NCBI GenBank assembly: GCA_047495785.1
Contig: JBLDXI010000010.1
Location: forward strand, 1,860,001-1,924,000
DNA from: Lepidodermella squamata
Lineage: Eukaryota > Animalia > Gastrotricha
DNA length: 64,000 nucleotides
Reading direction: 5' to 3'
Within the stretch, counting starts at the first letter, position 1; every line of letters begins with the position of its first letter. The notes beneath the pieces are model-generated. The model searched no databases, was not told where the DNA came from, and was given only the letters and a program-made list of their open reading frames with translations. A program made the translations under genes and the position numbers. Positions 3,636 through 57,893 of the stretch are shown here, piece by piece.

Positions 3636-6020
3636 TCAAATCGGTGACATTTTTTTAGATATTTCCTTTGGACGCATCGGCGACGTAATTCGAGATAATC
3701 GAACAGCTGCCGCTTGTCGGCGGGTCGCATTGCCCGGAGTTGTGCTGCGTATTCCCGGGGTCCCTATCTCAACCTTCGCATTTTTAAGAATTTTCAGCAG
3801 CAGTGTCGAGACAATCAAAGACACCATTAGATCGATTATAGCTACGCCCAGTTGCTGATCCAAAGGATTTCTCAGCATCAGCATAATCAAGCTGGAGCAA
3901 GGTATGACAGTCAAAAAAATGAGTACAATGACCGACATTTCCTTGAAACCAGGCATCAAATCATCTCGCTTAGATTGTTTCAAGTTGAACAAAGCAAAAG
4001 CGGCCGGGATTAAAATAGCGAAATTAGCCGACAAGAGGCTTGCGAGCCAAGAAATCTGATCTGTTGAGGTGCAAACGATGGCGTAGCTTTCAACAAACGC
4101 ATCGGCCCCTTCATCGCGGTAACCTAATCCGATATTAGCCTCAACGCACTGCAATGGTTCGATCGCAAACAGCCATAGGCTCAAAATGAGAATATTAAGT
4201 AAAAGAAATGCAAAAGATGCCTTCAACGCCCCGAAAGTTTCGAAAATCATTGCTTTAGGAGGCTCGATAACGATTCTCTGAAAAATGGATTTCCGACTAG
4301 ACAACCTTGGGCCAGCACTTTGATGTTGAATAGTTCGATTCATTATTAAAATCTGAAACGATACTGCCGACGTTATGATTGACAGCGAAGTGAATTGAAG
4401 GAACAATCGAGCAATCCAAACTTTAAACGGTGAAATCGAAGTTTCGAGAACAAAGAGTATCGCAGACAAAGACAAAAGAAGGCTTCCTGATAGACAGCAA
4501 ATTATTAAAATCGGACAGTTCCGTTTCTCCCGGTTCCTAAACACGAGGATACTGATGTAAAGTTGGAAAATTAGCAGAAAGCCAGAAGTAGTCGATACTA
4601 TTATCAAAGAAATCCAGCTATTATCCACCAGACGTTTGACCACAGATTCCAGATCTTTCGGGCTTCTGCCGTCCAGGGTTGGCCAAGGGAATTTGTCCAC
4701 TATCAGCGTTACTTCAGTGTTCTCATATTCATCGCTCGAATTAGAGGCTATACTCACTGCTTGCACTAATTTAGACCCACTTAACAGAGTAACATAGTAC
4801 GGCGTATTTTGAAGATTTCCCTTGCTATCATAAGTTACAACTGAGGTTCTCAGCGGGTTGTATTTGATAGCGACGAAGTTTTGCTTGGCTGCTTCTATAA
4901 CTAAATTAGGCTTGGTAACAAAATCTCTCAGAGAAAGATTTCTAAAGCTCAAATCTTTCTCGGTCCTATCCAGGGCGACAATCGTTTGCATCACAGTATC
5001 ATGGCATACCCAATTGTAACCGTAGTCGGACGTTTTCACACCTCGACTTCTCTCATTGAACAAAACATCGAATTCCCTCTTACTGTAACCAAAATCACTG
5101 TTATGCGTTTCCTCCCCATCTCCATCGATTGAGGCAAGCACCAGCGTTTGCTTGAACTGCTCCATATAGATCTCTTTGCTGCAATTAAGACTTGCAGTTG
5201 ATAGATCTGTCACCCAAGTCCAAAGAGCTTGAATTCCTGTATCAATGCCTAAGTAGAGATACTTCGGCCCCTTCAAATCGGCTTCGTAAGCTAGGCAAAA
5301 GAGGTTAGGGTGCCAGGAAGTGCTGTAAATCAGGATTATCCTCAGATCTTTCTCCTTCAGATTTCGAGCAGCTTGCAAGTCGAAACTAGCCACTGTTTCG
5401 AATACAGGAACTGCTACGCCTTGCGACTGAGCTGCGTTCAAAAAATGAAGACCACCTGTGAAATCGTTAGAATTTTCCTGATTGATGATTACTGCTATAT
5501 TGCGCCACTTTCCGATTGTCTTCATAAATTTGATGTAACCGAAATTTTTGTTAATCATAGTAGTGAGGGATAGATACATATTAGGGTACCTTTTACGGTC
5601 TGATAGAACGGGGTGAGTACAAATTGATGAGACGCTCATGAAATGGATGTGATGTAGAAAATTGCCAATCCCGCGGCATCCATTCGAATTCCAAGGTCCT
5701 GCAGCTATCGGGGATGGGTATTCTACCGAATCTCCTCGGTTTTCGTAATAATTTCGGTAGTAGTCAATGAAAGCTGTCGGGGCGTTATTCCCTCCCAATT
5801 TTTCATCGCCGAATATGAGTTCAACATTGTACGAAGGTAGATACTTTGTGTTGTTGTTAGCCCATTCAGCTGCTAGCGATGCAGCCAGTCGACACATGAT
5901 TGGGACGTAGTCTGTTCCTGTGATTCGACTCTGGACATGAAGAGCCAATGTATATGGCTTCGGCTGGCTAAGTTGTGTTTGGATACTTGGAATAGATAGC
6001 AGTATTATGACGGAAATCAT
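3636..6020 (-). CDS. Class C GPCR, GABA-B-like, paralog 2 (794 aa, intronless)
   Basis: Signal peptide; ANF-receptor/VFT motifs (YLPSYNVEL, GPWNS, CTHPVLSDRKRYP, WRNIAVI); WP..DG.SP.D linker with no Cys-rich domain; seven hydrophobic segments. Confidence 0.9.
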   Translation of the reverse strand: MISVIILLSIPSIQTQLSQPKPYTLALHVQSRITGTDYVPIMCRLAASLAAEWANNNTKYLPSYNVELIFGDEKLGGNNAPTAFIDYYRNYYENRGDSVEYPSPIAAGPWNSNGCRGIGNFLHHIHFMSVSSICTHPVLSDRKRYPNMYLSLTTMINKNFGYIKFMKTIGKWRNIAVIINQENSNDFTGGLHFLNAAQSQGVAVPVFETVASFDLQAARNLKEKDLRIILIYSTSWHPNLFCLAYEADLKGPKYLYLGIDTGIQALWTWVTDLSTASLNCSKEIYMEQFKQTLVLASIDGDGEETHNSDFGYSKREFDVLFNERSRGVKTSDYGYNWVCHDTVMQTIVALDRTEKDLSFRNLSLRDFVTKPNLVIEAAKQNFVAIKYNPLRTSVVTYDSKGNLQNTPYYVTLLSGSKLVQAVSIASNSSDEYENTEVTLIVDKFPWPTLDGRSPKDLESVVKRLVDNSWISLIIVSTTSGFLLIFQLYISILVFRNREKRNCPILIICCLSGSLLLSLSAILFVLETSISPFKVWIARLFLQFTSLSIITSAVSFQILIMNRTIQHQSAGPRLSSRKSIFQRIVIEPPKAMIFETFGALKASFAFLLLNILILSLWLFAIEPLQCVEANIGLGYRDEGADAFVESYAIVCTSTDQISWLASLLSANFAILIPAAFALFNLKQSKRDDLMPGFKEMSVIVLIFLTVIPCSSLIMLMLRNPLDQQLGVAIIDLMVSLIVSTLLLKILKNAKVEIGTPGIRSTTPGNATRRQAAAVRLSRITSPMRPKEISKKMSPI

Positions 6021-23008: not shown

Positions 23009-25336
23009 TCATCGAATAGCTGACGATCGGCTTTGGAACGCATTGTCGTAAGTGGTGCTGCGTCTCCCCATTGTCCCTATTTCACCCTTCGCAGTCTTTG
23101 AGACTTTGAGCAGCATTGTTGAAACAATAAATGACACCAGCAGATCAATTATCGCTAGTCCGACTTGCTGATCTAAAGGATTCCGAAGCATTAGCAAAAT
23201 CAAGCTGGAACAAGGTATAACAGTCAACAAATTGATTACAATGACTGACATCTCCCTGAACCCGGGCATCAAATCATCTCGTCCAGATTGTTTGAGATTG
23301 AACAAAGCAAACGCAGCCGGGATTAATATAGCGAAATTAGCTGACAAGAGGCTTGCAAGCCAAGACGTATGGTCTGTGGAGGTGCAGACGATGACGTAGC
23401 TTTCAACATACTCATCAGCCCCCTCATCGCGGTAACCCAATCCGATATTAGCCTCAGCGCACTGCAATGGTTCAATGGCAAACAGCCATAGACTTAGTAT
23501 GAGAATATTAAGAAAAAGGAAGCCAAAAGATGCCTTTAACGCTCCGAAGCCATTGAATACCATTGCCTTAGGAGATTCGAAAACGATTATGGGGAAAGTG
23601 GATTTCCGTCTAGACGATCGTGGTCCAGTACTTTGATGTTGAATAGTTCGATTCATTACTAAAATCTGAAACGATACTGTTGACGTTACGATTGATAGGG
23701 ACGTAAATTGAATAAACAGTCGAACAATCCACATGATTTGCGGTGCAATCGAAGTTTCGAGAACGAAGAATATCGCAGACAAACACAACAGCATGCTACC
23801 TGATAGACAGCAATTTATCATATGCGGACAGCTCAACTTCTCTCGTTGCACAAACACAGTGATACTAATGTAGAGTTGGAATATGATGGAGAAACCAGAA
23901 ATCGTCGAAACTGCTATCATATGAACCCAGCTGTTATCTATCAAGCGTTTAACTACAGATTCCAGATCTTTTGGGCTTTTGCCATCCACGGTTGGCCAGG
24001 GAAATTTCCCCACTAACAGCGTTACTTTAACGTTCTCATATTCATTGCTCGAATTGGAAGAAATACTCATAGCTTGGACCAATTTAGACCCATTCAGAAG
24101 AGTAACATAGTATGGCATACCTTGAAGATTTCCCTTACTGTCATAATTTACAGCTGAGGTTCTCAGCGGATTGTATTTGATAGCAACGAAGTTTTCCTTC
24201 GCTGCCTCTATGATTAAACCAGGCTTGGTTACAAAATCTCTCAGAGAAATATTCCTCAAGCTCAAGTCTCTCTCTGTCCTATCTAGGGCCACTATAGTTT
24301 GCATCACCGTATCATGGCATACCCAATTGTAATCGTAGTCAGACGTTTTCACTCCTCGACTTCTCTCATTAAACAGAACATCGAATTCCCTTTTGCTGTA
24401 ACCAAAATCGCTAGCATGTGTTTCATCACCATCTCCATCGATTGTACCAAGGACCAGCGTTTGCCTGAACTGTTCACGAAGGATCTCCTTCTTGCAACTA
24501 AGACTTGTAGATTGGTCCAAAACTAAATTCCAAAGCGATTGAATTCCTGTGTCCATTCCCAAGAACAAATACTTGCGCCCTTTCAAGTCAGCCTCGTAAG
24601 CCAAACAAAAAATATCAGCGAGCTGAAACCAGGAAGTACTGTAAATTATGATTATTCTCAGATCTATCTCCTTCAGATTTCGAGCAGCTTGCAAGTCGAA
24701 ACTAGCCACTGTTTCAAATACAGGAACTGCTACGCCTTGCGACTGAGCTGCGTTCAAAAAATGAAGACCACCTGTGAAATCGTTAGAATTTTCCTGATTG
24801 ATGATAACAGCTATATTGCGCCACTTTCCGATTGTCTTCATAAATTTGATGTAACCGAAATTTTTGTTTACCATAGTAGTAAGCGACAGGTACATATTAG
24901 GGTACCTTTTACGGTCTGATAGAACTGGGTGCGTACATATTGATGACAGACTCATAAAATTGATGTGATGCAGAAAATTCCCAATTCCACGACATCCGTT
25001 CGAATTCCAAGGCCCTGCAGCTATCGGAGATGGATATACCACCGAATCTCCTCGGTTTTCGAAATAATTTCGGTAGTAGTCAATGAAAGCTGTCGGGGCG
25101 TTATTTCCTGCTACTTTCTCGTCACCAAATACGAGTTCAACATTGTAAGCGGGTAGATACTTGGTGTTGTTGTTAGCCCATTCAGCTGCTAGCGATGAAG
25201 CCAATCGACACATGATAGGGACGTGATCTGTCCCAGTGATTCGACTTTGGACATGCAAAGCCAACCTATAGGGCTTCGGTTGGCTAAGTTGTGCTTGGAT
25301 ATTTGGAAGGAATAGTAGTAATATTGTGAAAATCAT
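23009..25336 (-). CDS. Class C GPCR, GABA-B-like, paralog 3 (775 aa, intronless)
   Basis: Full-length close paralog of 3636..6020; ~230 bp of 5' flank is also shared (6020-6247 vs 25336-25565). Confidence 0.9.
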   Translation of the reverse strand: MIFTILLLFLPNIQAQLSQPKPYRLALHVQSRITGTDHVPIMCRLASSLAAEWANNNTKYLPAYNVELVFGDEKVAGNNAPTAFIDYYRNYFENRGDSVVYPSPIAAGPWNSNGCRGIGNFLHHINFMSLSSICTHPVLSDRKRYPNMYLSLTTMVNKNFGYIKFMKTIGKWRNIAVIINQENSNDFTGGLHFLNAAQSQGVAVPVFETVASFDLQAARNLKEIDLRIIIIYSTSWFQLADIFCLAYEADLKGRKYLFLGMDTGIQSLWNLVLDQSTSLSCKKEILREQFRQTLVLGTIDGDGDETHASDFGYSKREFDVLFNERSRGVKTSDYDYNWVCHDTVMQTIVALDRTERDLSLRNISLRDFVTKPGLIIEAAKENFVAIKYNPLRTSAVNYDSKGNLQGMPYYVTLLNGSKLVQAMSISSNSSNEYENVKVTLLVGKFPWPTVDGKSPKDLESVVKRLIDNSWVHMIAVSTISGFSIIFQLYISITVFVQREKLSCPHMINCCLSGSMLLCLSAIFFVLETSIAPQIMWIVRLFIQFTSLSIVTSTVSFQILVMNRTIQHQSTGPRSSRRKSTFPIIVFESPKAMVFNGFGALKASFGFLFLNILILSLWLFAIEPLQCAEANIGLGYRDEGADEYVESYVIVCTSTDHTSWLASLLSANFAILIPAAFALFNLKQSGRDDLMPGFREMSVIVINLLTVIPCSSLILLMLRNPLDQQVGLAIIDLLVSFIVSTMLLKVSKTAKGEIGTMGRRSTTYDNAFQSRSSAIR

Positions 25337-51863: not shown

Positions 51864-52406
51864 TCAAGGCTGGTAAAGTTCGGAGGTTGAGTTTTGTGCT
51901 TCCATGTACTTCGAGCAAGCAACTTCACAATTGTGCTCATCAAAGTGCGAATATAACCTCACAACATCCTCATCGCATCCATGTCGCTGTTCTTCGCAGG
52001 TTTTAGTTTCAGAGTTGAAGATTACATAAGGCTGAGAGAAACGCTTTCCGCATCCGCCAGCGATCTCGGGCCTGTACGAGCATTTCTGGCGGTTAGTCAG
52101 CGGCTCATCAGCAGGATTCAGCGGGGAATTGTCGCCACAAGTTTCGCGGCACTCCCAGACACTTTGGAAGGACATTTGCTCAACGTATTCTTGATTGCAG
52201 TCGCCGTATTCCAAAACGCAACGGCCGCTTGTGCTGTCAAAGACGTGATAATAGTCCAGGCCACCGATCATGCAGTGATAAGGCGCAGGTTTGAAAGAGC
52301 AGCGGTCTGTGCTTCGTTCGTGGCGACTGAAAGCAGTCCATTGGCAGCCGAGAGCCAAAGTCGCGACAGCACAGAATAGGACGATCCTTGTTACTGAGGC
52401 AGTCAT
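51864..52406 (-). CDS. Secreted two-domain atypical Kunitz-like protein
   Basis: Signal peptide; two 6-Cys domains with C-x8/9-C-x17-C-x6-C-x15-C-x3-C spacing; TATAAAA upstream (~52489). Confidence 0.8.
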   Translation of the reverse strand: MTASVTRIVLFCAVATLALGCQWTAFSRHERSTDRCSFKPAPYHCMIGGLDYYHVFDSTSGRCVLEYGDCNQEYVEQMSFQSVWECRETCGDNSPLNPADEPLTNRQKCSYRPEIAGGCGKRFSQPYVIFNSETKTCEEQRHGCDEDVVRLYSHFDEHNCEVACSKYMEAQNSTSELYQP

Positions 52407-52901: not shown

Positions 52902-53306
52902 ATGGTTCGCGTCGAACCACTTGCAATTTTCTTGACACTTTTACATCTCAGCAGCATTGTTAGTGGTAAGAGAGACGATAGGTGTGACCATAAGTTCCCC
53001 ATATGGAAATGCGAAGCTGATTTCGCCCCAGTTTGGATCTATCACCGCCATCACCGCAAATGCAAACTGGCAAATGCTTTCTGCTGGAGTGATTACGACC
53101 GTAGCATGATCTTCGCTGACGAATACGAATGCCGAGAAATCTGCATAGAGCAGGAAGAAAAGCCAGAACCAGATGAGCCGAAATTAAAGCGATATGGTCA
53201 TGGTGACTATGAATATGACTACCCGGAGCAAAAGCCCGAGCCGAAATACCCTGATTCTGATAGAAAATACAGCCGGAAGCGGCCTAGTAACAGACTATGG
53301 CTATGA
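52902..53306 (+). CDS. Secreted single-domain atypical Kunitz-like protein with an acidic/Tyr/Pro tail
   Basis: Signal peptide; C-x8-C-x16-C-x6-C-x15-C-x3-C; tail ...KRYGHGDYEYDYPEQKPEPK; AATAAA at ~53318. Confidence 0.78.
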   Translation: MVRVEPLAIFLTLLHLSSIVSGKRDDRCDHKFPIWKCEADFAPVWIYHRHHRKCKLANAFCWSDYDRSMIFADEYECREICIEQEEKPEPDEPKLKRYGHGDYEYDYPEQKPEPKYPDSDRKYSRKRPSNRLWL

Positions 53307-53537
53307 CATTTGTTTCAATAAACTCCCTAGCAACCGTTGCCAAGTTAAAGCTGTATCGGTGTGAAATAATGAATTTAGCTGCTGAAAGCCATGTCTCACT
53401 TTCATGTGCATTGTTTGCCTCATTAAATGAATTAACGCAAAGAGTACACTCATATTTCACCGCTGTGCGCTAGCCATCCGCCTTAATGCGTTTGTTCTCA
53501 ATTCTATGAAGTACATAGCTGCTATACAGTGCTATAC

Positions 53538-53556
53538 TACACACACACACACACAC
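53538..53556. repeat. (CA)n microsatellite
   Basis: acacacacacacacacac. Confidence 0.8.
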
Positions 53557-53753
53557 GCAAATCTAACGTTGCTTCCGTCCCGCGCATTTAATTTCGTCGT
53601 GCCGTGTTTACCGCCGCAAACGACATTTTTTGCGGCTAGACGCCTCGAATTTTCGCTTAGTTTCCGGCACTCGACTAGGCGCGGCCCTTTTCCCTCGATA
53701 TTGCCTTGTAAAAATTCAGTATAATTTCTCTTGCCAAAAAATTAGAAGCTATA

Positions 53754-55616
53754 ATGAAGGTCGACATAAAGCCAGTATCTTTCTACCGCGAATTCTCACC
53801 AGCTGAGGTCGAAATTATTTTCCGAGAAGCCACCAATCACCTCGTGAAACTCGATAACTTCAAGGATCGTTGCATTGGCATTGCTGCTATTAAAATAACT
53901 ACAAATACGAGCAGCGATAGTACTGAATTGGAGTCAAGCACTCAAAATATGTATTTACTCGCAATATCTGGCGATGATACCCCGGAGAACAAGATAACTA
54001 ATCACATCGAAGAATTTCTCCATGAGAAGCAGAACCGGTCAATGGCGGATGAGGAGCCGTTCTTCTGGCAGCAGGTCAGTTTTGCTGGTTTCGACGCAGC
54101 CAGGCGGCAAGATCAAAGAAGCATGTATTCTCAGGGTCTACCTATCTCCTTCGGGTCTCATCTTTACATCGATGATTTCGATAAGAAGACTCTCATCTCC
54201 GAAACAGAAAGTCGACTTTACGAAGCTAAAAATGGGCTTCGGTCACGCTTGGCTGGTTTTCTATCAACATGGAGTGATGCCAGGTCACGCTTGGCTGAAC
54301 TCAACGACGAAAGCCCGATTCTACCTTACTGCGAAAGATTCAACTTCGATTTCGATGTTTGCACCAGTCGAGATAGCTACTGGTTAACGTGGTTCGTTCA
54401 GGAGCCTGAATCTATTCGAAACATTTCCGAAAAATTACTGACTATCATTGAGAACGACGCGCCTGTTTCTCATTTTACCAAAGACCCGGATGACTTCACC
54501 TGGCAGGAATTTCTATTAGCGAAACGGGACTACTTCGCCAACGTCATCGATTGGGACGAGCTAACTTCGATTTTCCAGATCTGCGGCATCGAAGATCTGA
54601 GAATGTTCTGTTACGACGAATCCCGGTTTAAAATTATATTCAAGTCGAAACTAGACGACAATCAAATGTCGATATGCTTGGACTTCTTATGGCGGTACAA
54701 GCAATTTCGTCACTTTATTTGCCACGCTTTGAAGAAACCAGACTTCTCACCTGAGGAAATGGTCGAGAAATTAGCTACAATTGCGAGATTGAACAAATGG
54801 GCGTCACGGGACTGGCCGAGGTTAGGATCTATGCCTATATCGGAAGATGTTGGTTGTCAGGCCGGTAATATCTGTGACTCTGAAACTCTTAAAAAGCAGT
54901 TGATCGAGATATACCATGTAGACCCTCATTGCTTAACAGGAAATTCGGCTGAGTTCCAGGTAATCTATGCAGATTCATTCAAGTTACCCGGGTCTTACTT
55001 CAAATCAGCGGTGGAGTACCTAAATTTGCTGGAAGATGCTTCCTTGCTCAAACTTGAGGATTTCCAGCGAATCGTCAAAAAGTTACGAGATTCACGTGTT
55101 TCGACGAGTGTTCTAATCCCTGGTCAGGATACCGAGCAACAATGTGATAAAATGTATGCAACTCTAAGACTATACAACTTACAGGACGCTTACAAACTCG
55201 AGATGGCTGTTCGAGGATTCCGTGACTTCTACTCTAAGTTTGAGAGGATAATTCAAGATTCGATCTATCGACTGTGCTATGACGAAGCTCTGGACACTGC
55301 TTCAGCTTTTGTCGGCTTGTGGCCACCACCTAAGCCCTACAAAAGTCGAGTTTTGGCATTTTACCCTCATTGCGCTGAGGATAATGTTAGCCCAGCTATT
55401 CGAGGCCTTGTAATGGCTGCTAGCCAGCTCGGATGTGTTGTGGACTCGATTAAGGTGACATGGTACTGCGTCCAACCGTCTGAGAATGGCGAACAATTCT
55501 ACGATCAAACGCTTTGCCCGATTTGTAAGCCGAAATTTGTGCAACGGCTCACGAATTTATTGAGAAATGACGTTATCGACTATCACTTACCAACAGTTTT
55601 TGTATCATCTGAATGA
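53754..55616 (+). CDS. 620-aa intronless protein; candidate Zn-dependent deaminase-fold protein with a large insert
   Basis: Long ORF with AATAAA at ~55645. N-terminal strands CIGIAAIKI and YLLAISG; C-terminal HCAE (aa 539-542), strand IKVTWYC and LCPIC (aa 587-591). The CDS is confident; the function is inferred. Confidence 0.75.
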   Translation: MKVDIKPVSFYREFSPAEVEIIFREATNHLVKLDNFKDRCIGIAAIKITTNTSSDSTELESSTQNMYLLAISGDDTPENKITNHIEEFLHEKQNRSMADEEPFFWQQVSFAGFDAARRQDQRSMYSQGLPISFGSHLYIDDFDKKTLISETESRLYEAKNGLRSRLAGFLSTWSDARSRLAELNDESPILPYCERFNFDFDVCTSRDSYWLTWFVQEPESIRNISEKLLTIIENDAPVSHFTKDPDDFTWQEFLLAKRDYFANVIDWDELTSIFQICGIEDLRMFCYDESRFKIIFKSKLDDNQMSICLDFLWRYKQFRHFICHALKKPDFSPEEMVEKLATIARLNKWASRDWPRLGSMPISEDVGCQAGNICDSETLKKQLIEIYHVDPHCLTGNSAEFQVIYADSFKLPGSYFKSAVEYLNLLEDASLLKLEDFQRIVKKLRDSRVSTSVLIPGQDTEQQCDKMYATLRLYNLQDAYKLEMAVRGFRDFYSKFERIIQDSIYRLCYDEALDTASAFVGLWPPPKPYKSRVLAFYPHCAEDNVSPAIRGLVMAASQLGCVVDSIKVTWYCVQPSENGEQFYDQTLCPICKPKFVQRLTNLLRNDVIDYHLPTVFVSSE

Positions 55617-55806
55617 ACTGTTAACATTATCACCATGACTTGCAAATAAAATGGTATTTTTGATCAACAGGAATTTGTTTTGGTTTGGGATTGTTGACAT
55701 AAAGAGTTTGCAGTTCGCAGTTCGCAGACATATTGTTTACCTAGTGAAATAATTTAAAAACAAAGGCTATCAGTTGAGCATAGTGTTGATCTAAAGTGTT
55801 ATAGCA

Positions 55807-56328
55807 ATGTCTCCTCTTAGAGTAAGCTCAATTTCAATGATCGTCCTCATGGCTGGATTTGCAATGGCAGAATCCTTAGTTAACGACACACGATGCTCTT
55901 ACCGTGGACCAATCGACAATTGCCACGTTTCAAGCTTTGCGAGTTACATAATTTTCGACCCAACCTTCAAGCTATGCCATGTTGCTATTGGCAGTCCTTG
56001 TGATGGCGACGAGATCGAGGCTATGTCCTTTGAAACTACGGAGCAATGCCGGGAGATTTGCGGCGATTCAAGCAACAGCACTCGGCTCCCAGAGCGATAC
56101 GAAATCCTCGAGCGTCAACACAAGGTTATGAGTTATTGCAATTACAAACCTCAAACTAACTCATCGTGCTCGAAAGACTTCTCCTATGGCCCGTACGTTG
56201 TTTACAATTCCGAGGTGAAAAGGTGTGAGTTGCAAACAAGTGGTTGCAACGAGGAGGATGCTAAGGATCACGCATTCAAGGACAAAGCTGAATGTCAATC
56301 TCTCTGCTTTTCCATTTCTATTCATTGA
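55807..56328 (+). CDS. Secreted two-domain atypical Kunitz-like protein
   Basis: Signal peptide; RCSY...C...FD...C...C...MSF...CREIC and CNY.P...C...GPYVVYNSE.K.C...GC...C...C; N-glycosylation sequons. Confidence 0.8.
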   Translation: MSPLRVSSISMIVLMAGFAMAESLVNDTRCSYRGPIDNCHVSSFASYIIFDPTFKLCHVAIGSPCDGDEIEAMSFETTEQCREICGDSSNSTRLPERYEILERQHKVMSYCNYKPQTNSSCSKDFSYGPYVVYNSEVKRCELQTSGCNEEDAKDHAFKDKAECQSLCFSISIH

Positions 56329-56678: not shown

Positions 56679-57893
56679 ATGCTGCTCAGAATACTGATAA
56701 AGCTGTTGTTTACCCAGCATTACATACTACATCAAATTGATGCCGATTCAAATTATGCCTCGAATCTCAGCTATGACGAGCTTTCGGTCCAGTTTTTCGA
56801 GAGAGACTGCCCGCTAGCCAAGTCACGTAATTTAATCACGGATCTCGATCTCCAAAATCGAGACTATGCTTTTCCTCTCGAGGTGAGGCTTGATCTATAT
56901 ATCTTTCGAATCATAGAAATCGACGATATAAAACAGAGGTAACGCATTTTGTTCGTCTCAATCGCTCTGGGCAAATTGTTTTTCTTTAGCCTTTCAGCAA
57001 GAGCTGGTCCTGTTATTACCTGGATTATGCCTGAATTCGGTTGTAAGCACCCTGCAGTTCCTGACATGAAAACTAGACTGAAGTTCCGGCGACCTAAATC
57101 TGAAACATTCTACATCGATCTTTATCATTTGAACGCCTTGGACGGATCTGATTGGCTGGGAAAGCTAACTGACTGGGTTGAGTTCCAGGCGTATGAAACC
57201 CCTGTCCAGGCCAATTACTACGGCGAAACGCTGATAGAAACAGCCTGCGAAGGCTTCTCACTAGCGAAATTTCCATTCGATAAAATGTCTTGTTCAATCG
57301 TGGTTGAAGGTTACGCCAACGCAAGTCAGGCCAAAATATCCAGGTACACTATGGGCTATTCCGAGGCTTTACTCCAAGACGGCAATATCTGGCGAGCTTT
57401 GACATCACAGTTCAACGTTTCTCGAATCTCTGTCTACCATCATTCATCAGAATTGGACCAAGTCAAGTTCACTATGGTTTTTCAACGGCAGCATCACTAC
57501 TACATAGGCAACATATTTGTACCCCTTGCTGCTATGGTGATCCTCCAATTTTCGGCCTTCATCATGAGCCCGGAATTTCCTGACCGGCCGACATTCAGCA
57601 TAACCGTCGTGTTAGCCTTCGCTGTACTACTTTCAATCGTTTCTGAGCAGATTCCGAAAACCTCAGAAACTGTCCATCTCATCACGCTGGTTTGCGTTCA
57701 GATGTTGGCATGTGCAGCTATAACGGTTTATATGCAGTTTGCTTGCTATGTTGCAGCGACGAAATGGGGATTGAACATTAACAAATTTTTCCGGATGTGC
57801 AATGTCAGACTGTTAGATTTGGCAGCCTTTGCTGTTACCTTTTCAGCTCTTGCTATTGCCAGTGGTATTCTAATCGGCAAAATGGTTTATTGA
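56679..57893 (+). CDS. Divergent Cys-loop (pLGIC) ion channel subunit, 2 exons
   Basis: Exon 1 MLLRILIKLLF...VRLDLYIFRIIEIDDIKQ; 51-nt GT-AG intron at 56939-56989 restores the frame; Cys-loop CEGFSLAKFPFDKMSC; R..YY..NIFVP M1, PDRPTFSITVVLAF M2, IPKTS M2-M3 loop; four TMs. Confidence 0.88.

Follow-up and report, generated by a model that had tools for sequence, protein, structure and literature searches.

Gene and locus

The window, i.e., the whole 64,000-nucleotide stretch of DNA analysed here, contains an intact, intronless ORF of 620 residues with an ATG start, followed by a likely polyadenylation signal (Table 1). A search of the 121-Mb assembly returned a single copy of the gene and no paralogue, and its GC content, 0.44, equals that of its surroundings. 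The Kyte-Doolittle mean over 19 residues peaks at 1.41 and the N-terminal end is polar, so the protein is taken to lack a transmembrane segment as well as a signal peptide. The lack of introns and of both these segments had been described in a sequence-only reading of the locus and was borne out, as was the placement of its four motifs, AISG, PHCAEDN, IKVTWYC and LCPICK: A70-I-S-G73 closes the second of two N-terminal hydrophobic stretches, and the C-terminal motifs lie at P538-H-C540-A-E542-D-N544, I566-KVTWY-C572 and L587-C588-P-I-C591-K592.

Table 1. The 620-residue gene, its parts and neighbouring ORFs, in window positions
Feature	Residues	Position	Strand	Remarks
Gene for the 620-residue protein	1-620	53754-55616	+	Stop codon within the coordinates
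N-terminal alpha/beta domain	17-117	53802-54104	+	Predicted helix-strand-strand-helix-strand; kept by all three homologues
Hairpin CIGIAAIKI ... MYLLAISG, then DDTPEN	40-79	53871-53990	+	Y67, A70, S72, G73, E78 and N79 invariant in the three full members of the family
Mostly helical middle region	125-500	54126-55253	+	Shared with the 38% homologue; strongly shortened in the distant one
C-terminal conserved module	517-620	55302-55613	+	AFVGLW, RVLAFY, CAEDN helix, strand IKVTWYCV, 13-residue loop, CPICK helix, terminal strand
C540-A-E542-D-N544	540-544	55371-55385	+	Invariant; just ahead of a predicted helix start; proposed first zinc ligand and proton-shuttle Glu
C588-P-I-C591	588-591	55515-55526	+	Both Cys invariant, running into a predicted helix; proposed second and third zinc ligands
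Likely polyadenylation signal AATAAA		55645-55650	+	29 nt past the stop codon
Small secreted Cys-rich protein		51864-52406	-	Flanks the gene
Small secreted Cys-rich protein		52902-53306	+	Flanks the gene
Small secreted Cys-rich protein		55807-56328	+	Flanks the gene
314-residue ORF		56949-57893	+	End of a Cys-loop ligand-binding domain and transmembrane region
794-residue ORF		3636-6020	-	ANF_receptor ligand-binding domain
775-residue ORF		23009-25336	-	ANF_receptor ligand-binding domain

Contigs of a DNA run (X2) over window positions 53400-56000 fall into two allelic forms ~6% apart (16-17 differences over contigs of 247-287 bp), which implies high heterozygosity at this locus in the animal or population that was sequenced. 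The coding differences listed between the alleles number 39, of which 30 are synonymous and 9 non-synonymous; set against the 392 synonymous and 1468 non-synonymous sites compared, they give a ratio of ~0.08, which indicates that the reading frame is under purifying selection. In another run (X1), whose RNA label is a guess, five short contigs match perfectly, four of them in the 620-residue ORF and one in the next ORF; none matches intergenic DNA.

Besides this gene, the window encodes class C GPCRs, a cathepsin L-like protease, C2H2 zinc-finger proteins, an IIGP-like GTPase and a fragment of a Cys-loop channel, predicted genes that point to an animal genome. The possibility that the gene derives from a transposon or a contaminant was considered and ruled out: it is a single-copy gene with two diverged alleles and a GC content like that of its neighbours, and such an origin is also contradicted by the canonical GT-AG intron of a homologue, described below.

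A small family on eukaryote-like DNA

An exhaustive profile (HMM) search of 1.84 billion protein representatives returned only four proteins at E<=0.001 (P0001-P0004). P0001, which was also reached by word search, has 477 residues and is 38% identical over residues 173-608; its metagenome contig, 17.7 kb long, also carries Ras-like and thiamine-enzyme genes. A separate upstream ORF encodes the N-terminal 126 residues of this homologue; it starts with MKIDV (the window gene has MKVDI) and is connected to the P0001 ORF, right after ...YTQ, by a canonical GT-AG intron of ~116 nt. P0001 is thus part of a spliced eukaryotic gene, and the window gene either lost this intron or never had it. P0003, a fragment of 111 residues from the same sample as P0001, matches residues ~435-515; past the conserved helical part it diverges (L008, 1299-1634), and it may be a paralogue or a pseudogene.

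P0004 is a distant 159-residue ORF that corresponds to the C-terminal exon and is identical in five metagenomes. An ORF 5 nt upstream, in another frame, carries the N-terminal hairpin (...YIVAVSGQSG...EEN...), and the repetitive stretch between the two is probably an intron. In this homologue, far fewer residues separate the conserved N-terminal part from the C-terminal one than in the window gene. The distant homologue (L004, 1-8052; also L003 and L005) adjoins a called ORF of 4149-4731 residues that has no Pfam domain and a GC content of 70-75%, against ~50% in the homologue's own region; repetitive, GC-rich DNA may have produced this long ORF as an artefact.

More homologues were sought in JGI metagenomes, where none was found beyond the known contig, in 185,579 prokaryotic species genomes, where there was none, and by a word-index search, which gave nothing beyond P0001-P0004. 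The family profile run against 301 Bacteroidota genomes produced four matches at E 0.007-0.03, all with internal stops and fewer than expected by chance. The gene had been called an orphan, and this is nearly true: the family appears to be very small and eukaryote-restricted, with four proteins in 1.84 billion at the threshold above and no match in Pfam, NCBIfam or PDB. A further suggestion, that the gene was acquired horizontally, fared less well. There is no bacterial or viral relative at any threshold, the composition is native, and the DNA that carries the three members is eukaryote-like. Horizontal acquisition is therefore without support, although the divergence of the family would leave room for it.

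The three full members define what the family conserves. In the N-terminal part, the invariant residues are the six of the hairpin (Table 1); in the last ~100 residues they are V-G, R, A-F, C-A-E-D-N, G, V, Y, D, L-C-x-x-C, F, R-L and N, with C-A-E-D-N as the longest invariant block. Over this C-terminal block, the three homologues are 35-42% identical, and the module has no invariant Cys other than C540, C588 and C591; E542 is invariant in all three, so the four residues on which a zinc-dependent enzyme was postulated are all conserved, and D543, N544 and D584 are likewise invariant. Immediately upstream of CAEDN, two conserved hydrophobic stretches surround a Pro-rich turn (window gene, AFVGLW-PPPKPYKS-RVLAFY; distant member, YVGIEEHPILTGRFLAFF); AFVGLW and RVLAFY could be deaminase strands 1 and 2. 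A [CH]xE ... CxxC pair turns up in 4.2% of shuffles of the 620-residue protein and in one sequence alone is consequently weak evidence; its invariance in three homologues lifts it above chance here.

Structure prediction

Two AlphaFold models are of low confidence (pLDDT 41.8 and 51.7), and no deaminase was found among their Foldseek, VIA-align or Atlas matches. The sole part modelled with moderate confidence is the N-terminal domain (residues 17-117, pLDDT 55-78). At this low overall confidence, both runs place CAE at the start of a helix or two residues before it (the helix begins at 538-542), make C591 the first residue of a helix with C588 just before it, and put strands between and after the two motifs. 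Co-folding of residues 1-130 with residues 501-620 and zinc gave ipSAE values of 0.02 and 0.07, which do not weigh on either side of the question whether the two ends form one domain.

Similarity to known deaminases

Scans of the whole protein, its homologues and C-terminal pieces against Pfam, NCBIfam, PADLOC and PHROGs gave no meaningful match. Pfam profiles taken up to E<=10 gave nothing, with ADAR, ADAT, APOBEC and other deaminase models unmatched, in keeping with the earlier placement of the protein outside these three groups; sequence and profile searches of PDB gave nothing, or noise at E>1. PF14431, the YwqJ model, has no match in the gene's own genome, and its control was positive in Bacillus subtilis.

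Profile-profile comparison with hhalign used target alignments built from genomes: 31 Streptomycetales and 2 Bacillaceae YwqJ domains, 30 tetrameric CDAs, 3 Toxin-deaminase domains and, as a rival, 30 beta-carbonic anhydrases. The C-terminal alignment matched YwqJ at P=0.2 (observed score reached by 6 of 40 column shuffles), CDA at P=0.10-0.15 (9 of 40) and Toxin-deaminase at P=0.07 (1 of 40); against beta-carbonic anhydrase it gave P=0.63, and 33 of 40 shuffles reached the score. The scores against the deaminase families are thus slightly above those of column-shuffled controls, while the beta-carbonic anhydrase score is not. In the same set-up, known deaminase clades match one another at P=0.0012, 0.00023 and 0.015. 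Since the query amounts to ~1.7 effective sequences and has little power, these values neither show nor exclude a deaminase. At permissive settings, the alignment with YwqJ is co-linear and places CAE against C.E and CxxC against CxxC.

In an ESM-Atlas feature search with P0004 as the query, five of the six named neighbour sets shown carry toxin-deaminase families: YwqJ at 0.89, MsddA-like at 0.87 and Toxin-deaminase/MafB19 at 0.77-0.78, the clusters being partly or mostly so annotated. This search is noisy, as the top-ranked named set is Urocanase_N, evidently a spurious one. The full 620-residue protein as the query brought up GGDEF clusters at 0.76 only, which were treated as noise.

Two of these bacterial families were counted in sampled genomes. 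MsddA-like (PF24174) was found in none of 251 Pseudomonadota, and the YwqJ-deaminase domain in none of 401 Bacillota at E<=1e-6. The latter domain exceeds the Pfam cut-off in 270 of 301 Streptomycetales genomes (L132-L161), mostly once per genome, a spread far more uniform than would be expected of a polymorphic toxin module.

A candidate deaminase-like domain and its rivals

Three Cys and a Glu two residues past the first Cys form the catalytic zinc signature of the CDA type, as opposed to a four-ligand structural site. Members of the deaminase superfamily have [H/C/D]xE where helix 2 begins and (P)CxxC where helix 3 begins, within a three-layer alpha/beta/alpha fold whose sheet, of order 2-1-3-4(-5), draws the three ligands together. 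Because the invariant Cys and Glu stand at predicted helix starts and the architecture fits most of the published description of the YwqJ clade, a deaminase is a plausible reading of the C-terminal module. Our preferred version, to which we give slightly less than an even chance, is a contiguous, C-terminally truncated deaminase-fold domain, predicted to be a zinc-dependent base deaminase; counting also the split layout discussed below, a deaminase of either kind has about even odds. The idea of a deaminase thus came through in part: it gained the invariance of the motifs and the toxin-deaminase language-model neighbours, but no significant profile or profile-profile match and no structural match. 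Against it also stand the length of the loop ahead of CxxC and the missing Gly of the YwqJ motif Gx[CH]xE.

The protein would be cytosolic and consist of three parts: the N-terminal alpha/beta domain (residues ~17-117), a helical linker of variable length (~125-500) and the C-terminal module of ~110-120 residues. In this module, for which we infer fold, zinc binding, catalysis and substrate alike, AFVGLW would form strand 1 and RVLAFY strand 2, helix 2 would start from C540-A-E542, and IKVTWYCV would be strand 3, followed by a loop of 13-19 residues, helix 3 from C588-x-x-C591 and a last strand. Zinc would be held by C540, C588 and C591 with water as the fourth ligand, and E542 would act as the proton shuttle while a base, cytosine being the likeliest, is hydrolytically deaminated in a nucleotide or nucleic acid. 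Substrate choice or regulation may fall to the N-terminal domain and the linker.

The sequence-only reading had laid the domain out differently: strands 1 and 2 were the N-terminal hairpin (residues 40-73, with its SG end), and a helical insert of ~465 residues preceded helix 2 with CAEDN. Several observations agree with such a split domain. The hairpin, SG and EN are invariant and always occur together with the C-terminal module; by eye, the hairpin is similar to strands 1 and 2 in YwqJ-domain proteins from Streptomyces (AVAAALSV ... TLTCTAG), and the helix that follows it (..EEFL.. / ..NDFL..) resembles the insert past strand 2 of YwqJ (..VQDFL..); and the length of the linker differs among homologues, as that of an insert would. 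Yet residues 17-117, which AlphaFold models with more confidence than any other part of the protein, form a self-contained unit (helix-strand-strand-helix-strand) in the prediction. When the N-terminal alignment was compared with YwqJ or CDA by hhalign, only noise came back and strands 1 and 2 were not aligned with the hairpin; the His that is conserved in the YwqJ insert has no conserved counterpart here. The long insert is also not needed: the deaminase-like language-model neighbours came from the P0004 exon alone, which has no hairpin, and a candidate hairpin, AFVGLW / RVLAFY, directly precedes CAEDN. The split layout is accordingly improbable, and a contiguous minimal domain (about residues 500-620) is a candidate that fits at least as well.

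The resemblance to deaminases could also be coincidental, the C-terminal module being a non-catalytic zinc-binding or structural element of undescribed fold in a lineage-specific protein. Possible, if rather unlikely, this account draws on the failure of every profile, structure and family search to tie the module to any enzyme, on the frequency of the motif pair in shuffled sequence (4.2%, as above), on the invariant D543, N544 and D584, any of which could give a fourth ligand, and on the mostly helical character of a protein in which no domain is recognisable. It is weakened by the pattern of just three invariant Cys and an invariant Glu at +2, typical of catalytic rather than structural sites, by the several independent toxin-deaminase clusters among the language-model neighbours, and by the agreement of the predicted helix-start positions of both motifs with the deaminase template. 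A zinc site of the beta-carbonic-anhydrase kind is very improbable. Here C-A-E-D-N-V-S-P and C-x-x-C, ~50 residues apart, would replace C-x-D-x-R-V-x-P and H-x-x-C; the former partially matches the first beta-carbonic-anhydrase signature, C-[SA]-x-x-x-[LIVM]-x-[AP], and the ligand motifs are similarly spaced. However, the catalytic Asp and Arg would have become Glu and Asn, and the His a Cys; the Pfam Pro_CA model is unmatched, the hhalign score reported above is lower than that of most column shuffles, and no Pro_CA cluster is among the language-model neighbours shown, so that this reading is already close to refuted.

Comparison with known deaminase clades

Iyer et al. (2011, Table 1, PMC3239186) give the YwqJ clade a CxE or HxE motif, an insert that separates CxxC from strand 3, and domains that often stop short after helix 3 or strand 4; against this source, what the sequence-only reading had stated on the deaminase clades is broadly right. 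The family resembles YwqJ-like domains (PF14431) in its CxE variant at a predicted helix start and its CxxC at the start of the next helix, in the 13-19 residues from the strand to CxxC, in ending 17-29 residues past the second Cys, and in having a partly YwqJ-annotated cluster as a near language-model neighbour of its distant member (0.89). It differs in that neither HMM nor significant profile-profile similarity to PF14431 is seen. The Gly of Gx[CH]xE is replaced, with P-[HQ]-C-A-E in the window gene and the closer homologue and S-Q-C-A-E in the distant one, and the YwqJ His after strand 2 is absent: the contiguous model has no insert to hold it, and in the split model H84 is unconserved. 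Moreover, the 620-residue protein is eukaryotic and cytosolic, carries an N-terminal alpha/beta domain and a long helical linker, and has neither toxin-delivery domains nor an immunity gene.

Tetrameric CDA/CDD enzymes (TIGR01354) share the three-Cys zinc site C-A-E ... C-x-x-C and a small domain. Here, by contrast, no G-C-N-x-E-N substrate loop is found in register, a loop of 13-19 residues precedes CxxC, the C-terminal elements of CDA are missing, and the hhalign comparison stops at P=0.10-0.15. From OTT_1508-like deaminases (PF14441), with their fungal versions, the family differs in having CxE, not HxE, and no match to the Pfam model; there is no GxxK before CxxC (YDQTL, KDSQL or HLDL stands instead), the extended strand-4/helix-4 loop with H and axxP is missing, and the 620-residue protein ends after the last strand.

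MsddA-like, MafB19 and Toxin-deaminase families are language-model neighbours of the C-terminal exon (0.77-0.87) and have the same kind of minimal zinc site; unlike the window protein, they are toxin modules at the C-terminus of bacterial secreted proteins and carry HxE or DxE in most cases, and the hhalign comparison with the three Toxin-deaminase domains stops at P=0.07. Experiments have shown MsddA-like and MafB19 members to deaminate cytosine in DNA (bioRxiv 10.1101/2023.06.29.547047).

It is tempting, though doubtful, to see in the family a new clade of active nucleic-acid deaminases, so far found only on eukaryote-like DNA and missed by all current family models, in which a minimal catalytic core of four strands would be attached to an alpha/beta domain at the N-terminus and to a variable arm of helices, and which would serve in genome defence or editing in an invertebrate lineage. 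If this were so, a known superfamily would gain a clade. New deaminase clades are sought after. Time and again they have been found to act in eukaryotic immunity or editing; base editors and methods for methylation sequencing are developed from them, MsddA-like and DddA-like toxins being cases in point. An animal protein that combined a minimal CxE/CxxC core and targeting-like domains of its own with a lack of detectable relatives would also widen the range of the superfamily and imply that profile libraries miss whole clades. Should the motifs not be catalytic, the protein would still belong to a selectively maintained, almost orphan family. At present the deaminase claim is supported by motifs and by a lead from a language model, which makes it a well-defined hypothesis that is cheap to test.

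Neighbouring genes

The gene is flanked by three small secreted Cys-rich proteins (Table 1), two of which have two domains, with a six-Cys spacing that is roughly Kunitz-like; the three look like a local paralogous family. They had been described as secreted and Kunitz-like, and the first part of this description holds, as does the approximate spacing, but the best match to Pfam Kunitz_BPTI, obtained for one protein, is at E=0.33. Farther downstream, the 314-residue ORF with the end of a Cys-loop ligand-binding domain and a transmembrane region (Neur_chan_memb, E=4e-6) probably represents a single exon from a gene for a ligand-gated channel. Elsewhere in the window, two long uninterrupted ORFs each contain an ANF_receptor ligand-binding domain, and that of 794 residues also matches 7tm_3, just below the Pfam cut-off; both are class C GPCR-like genes and appear intron-poor.
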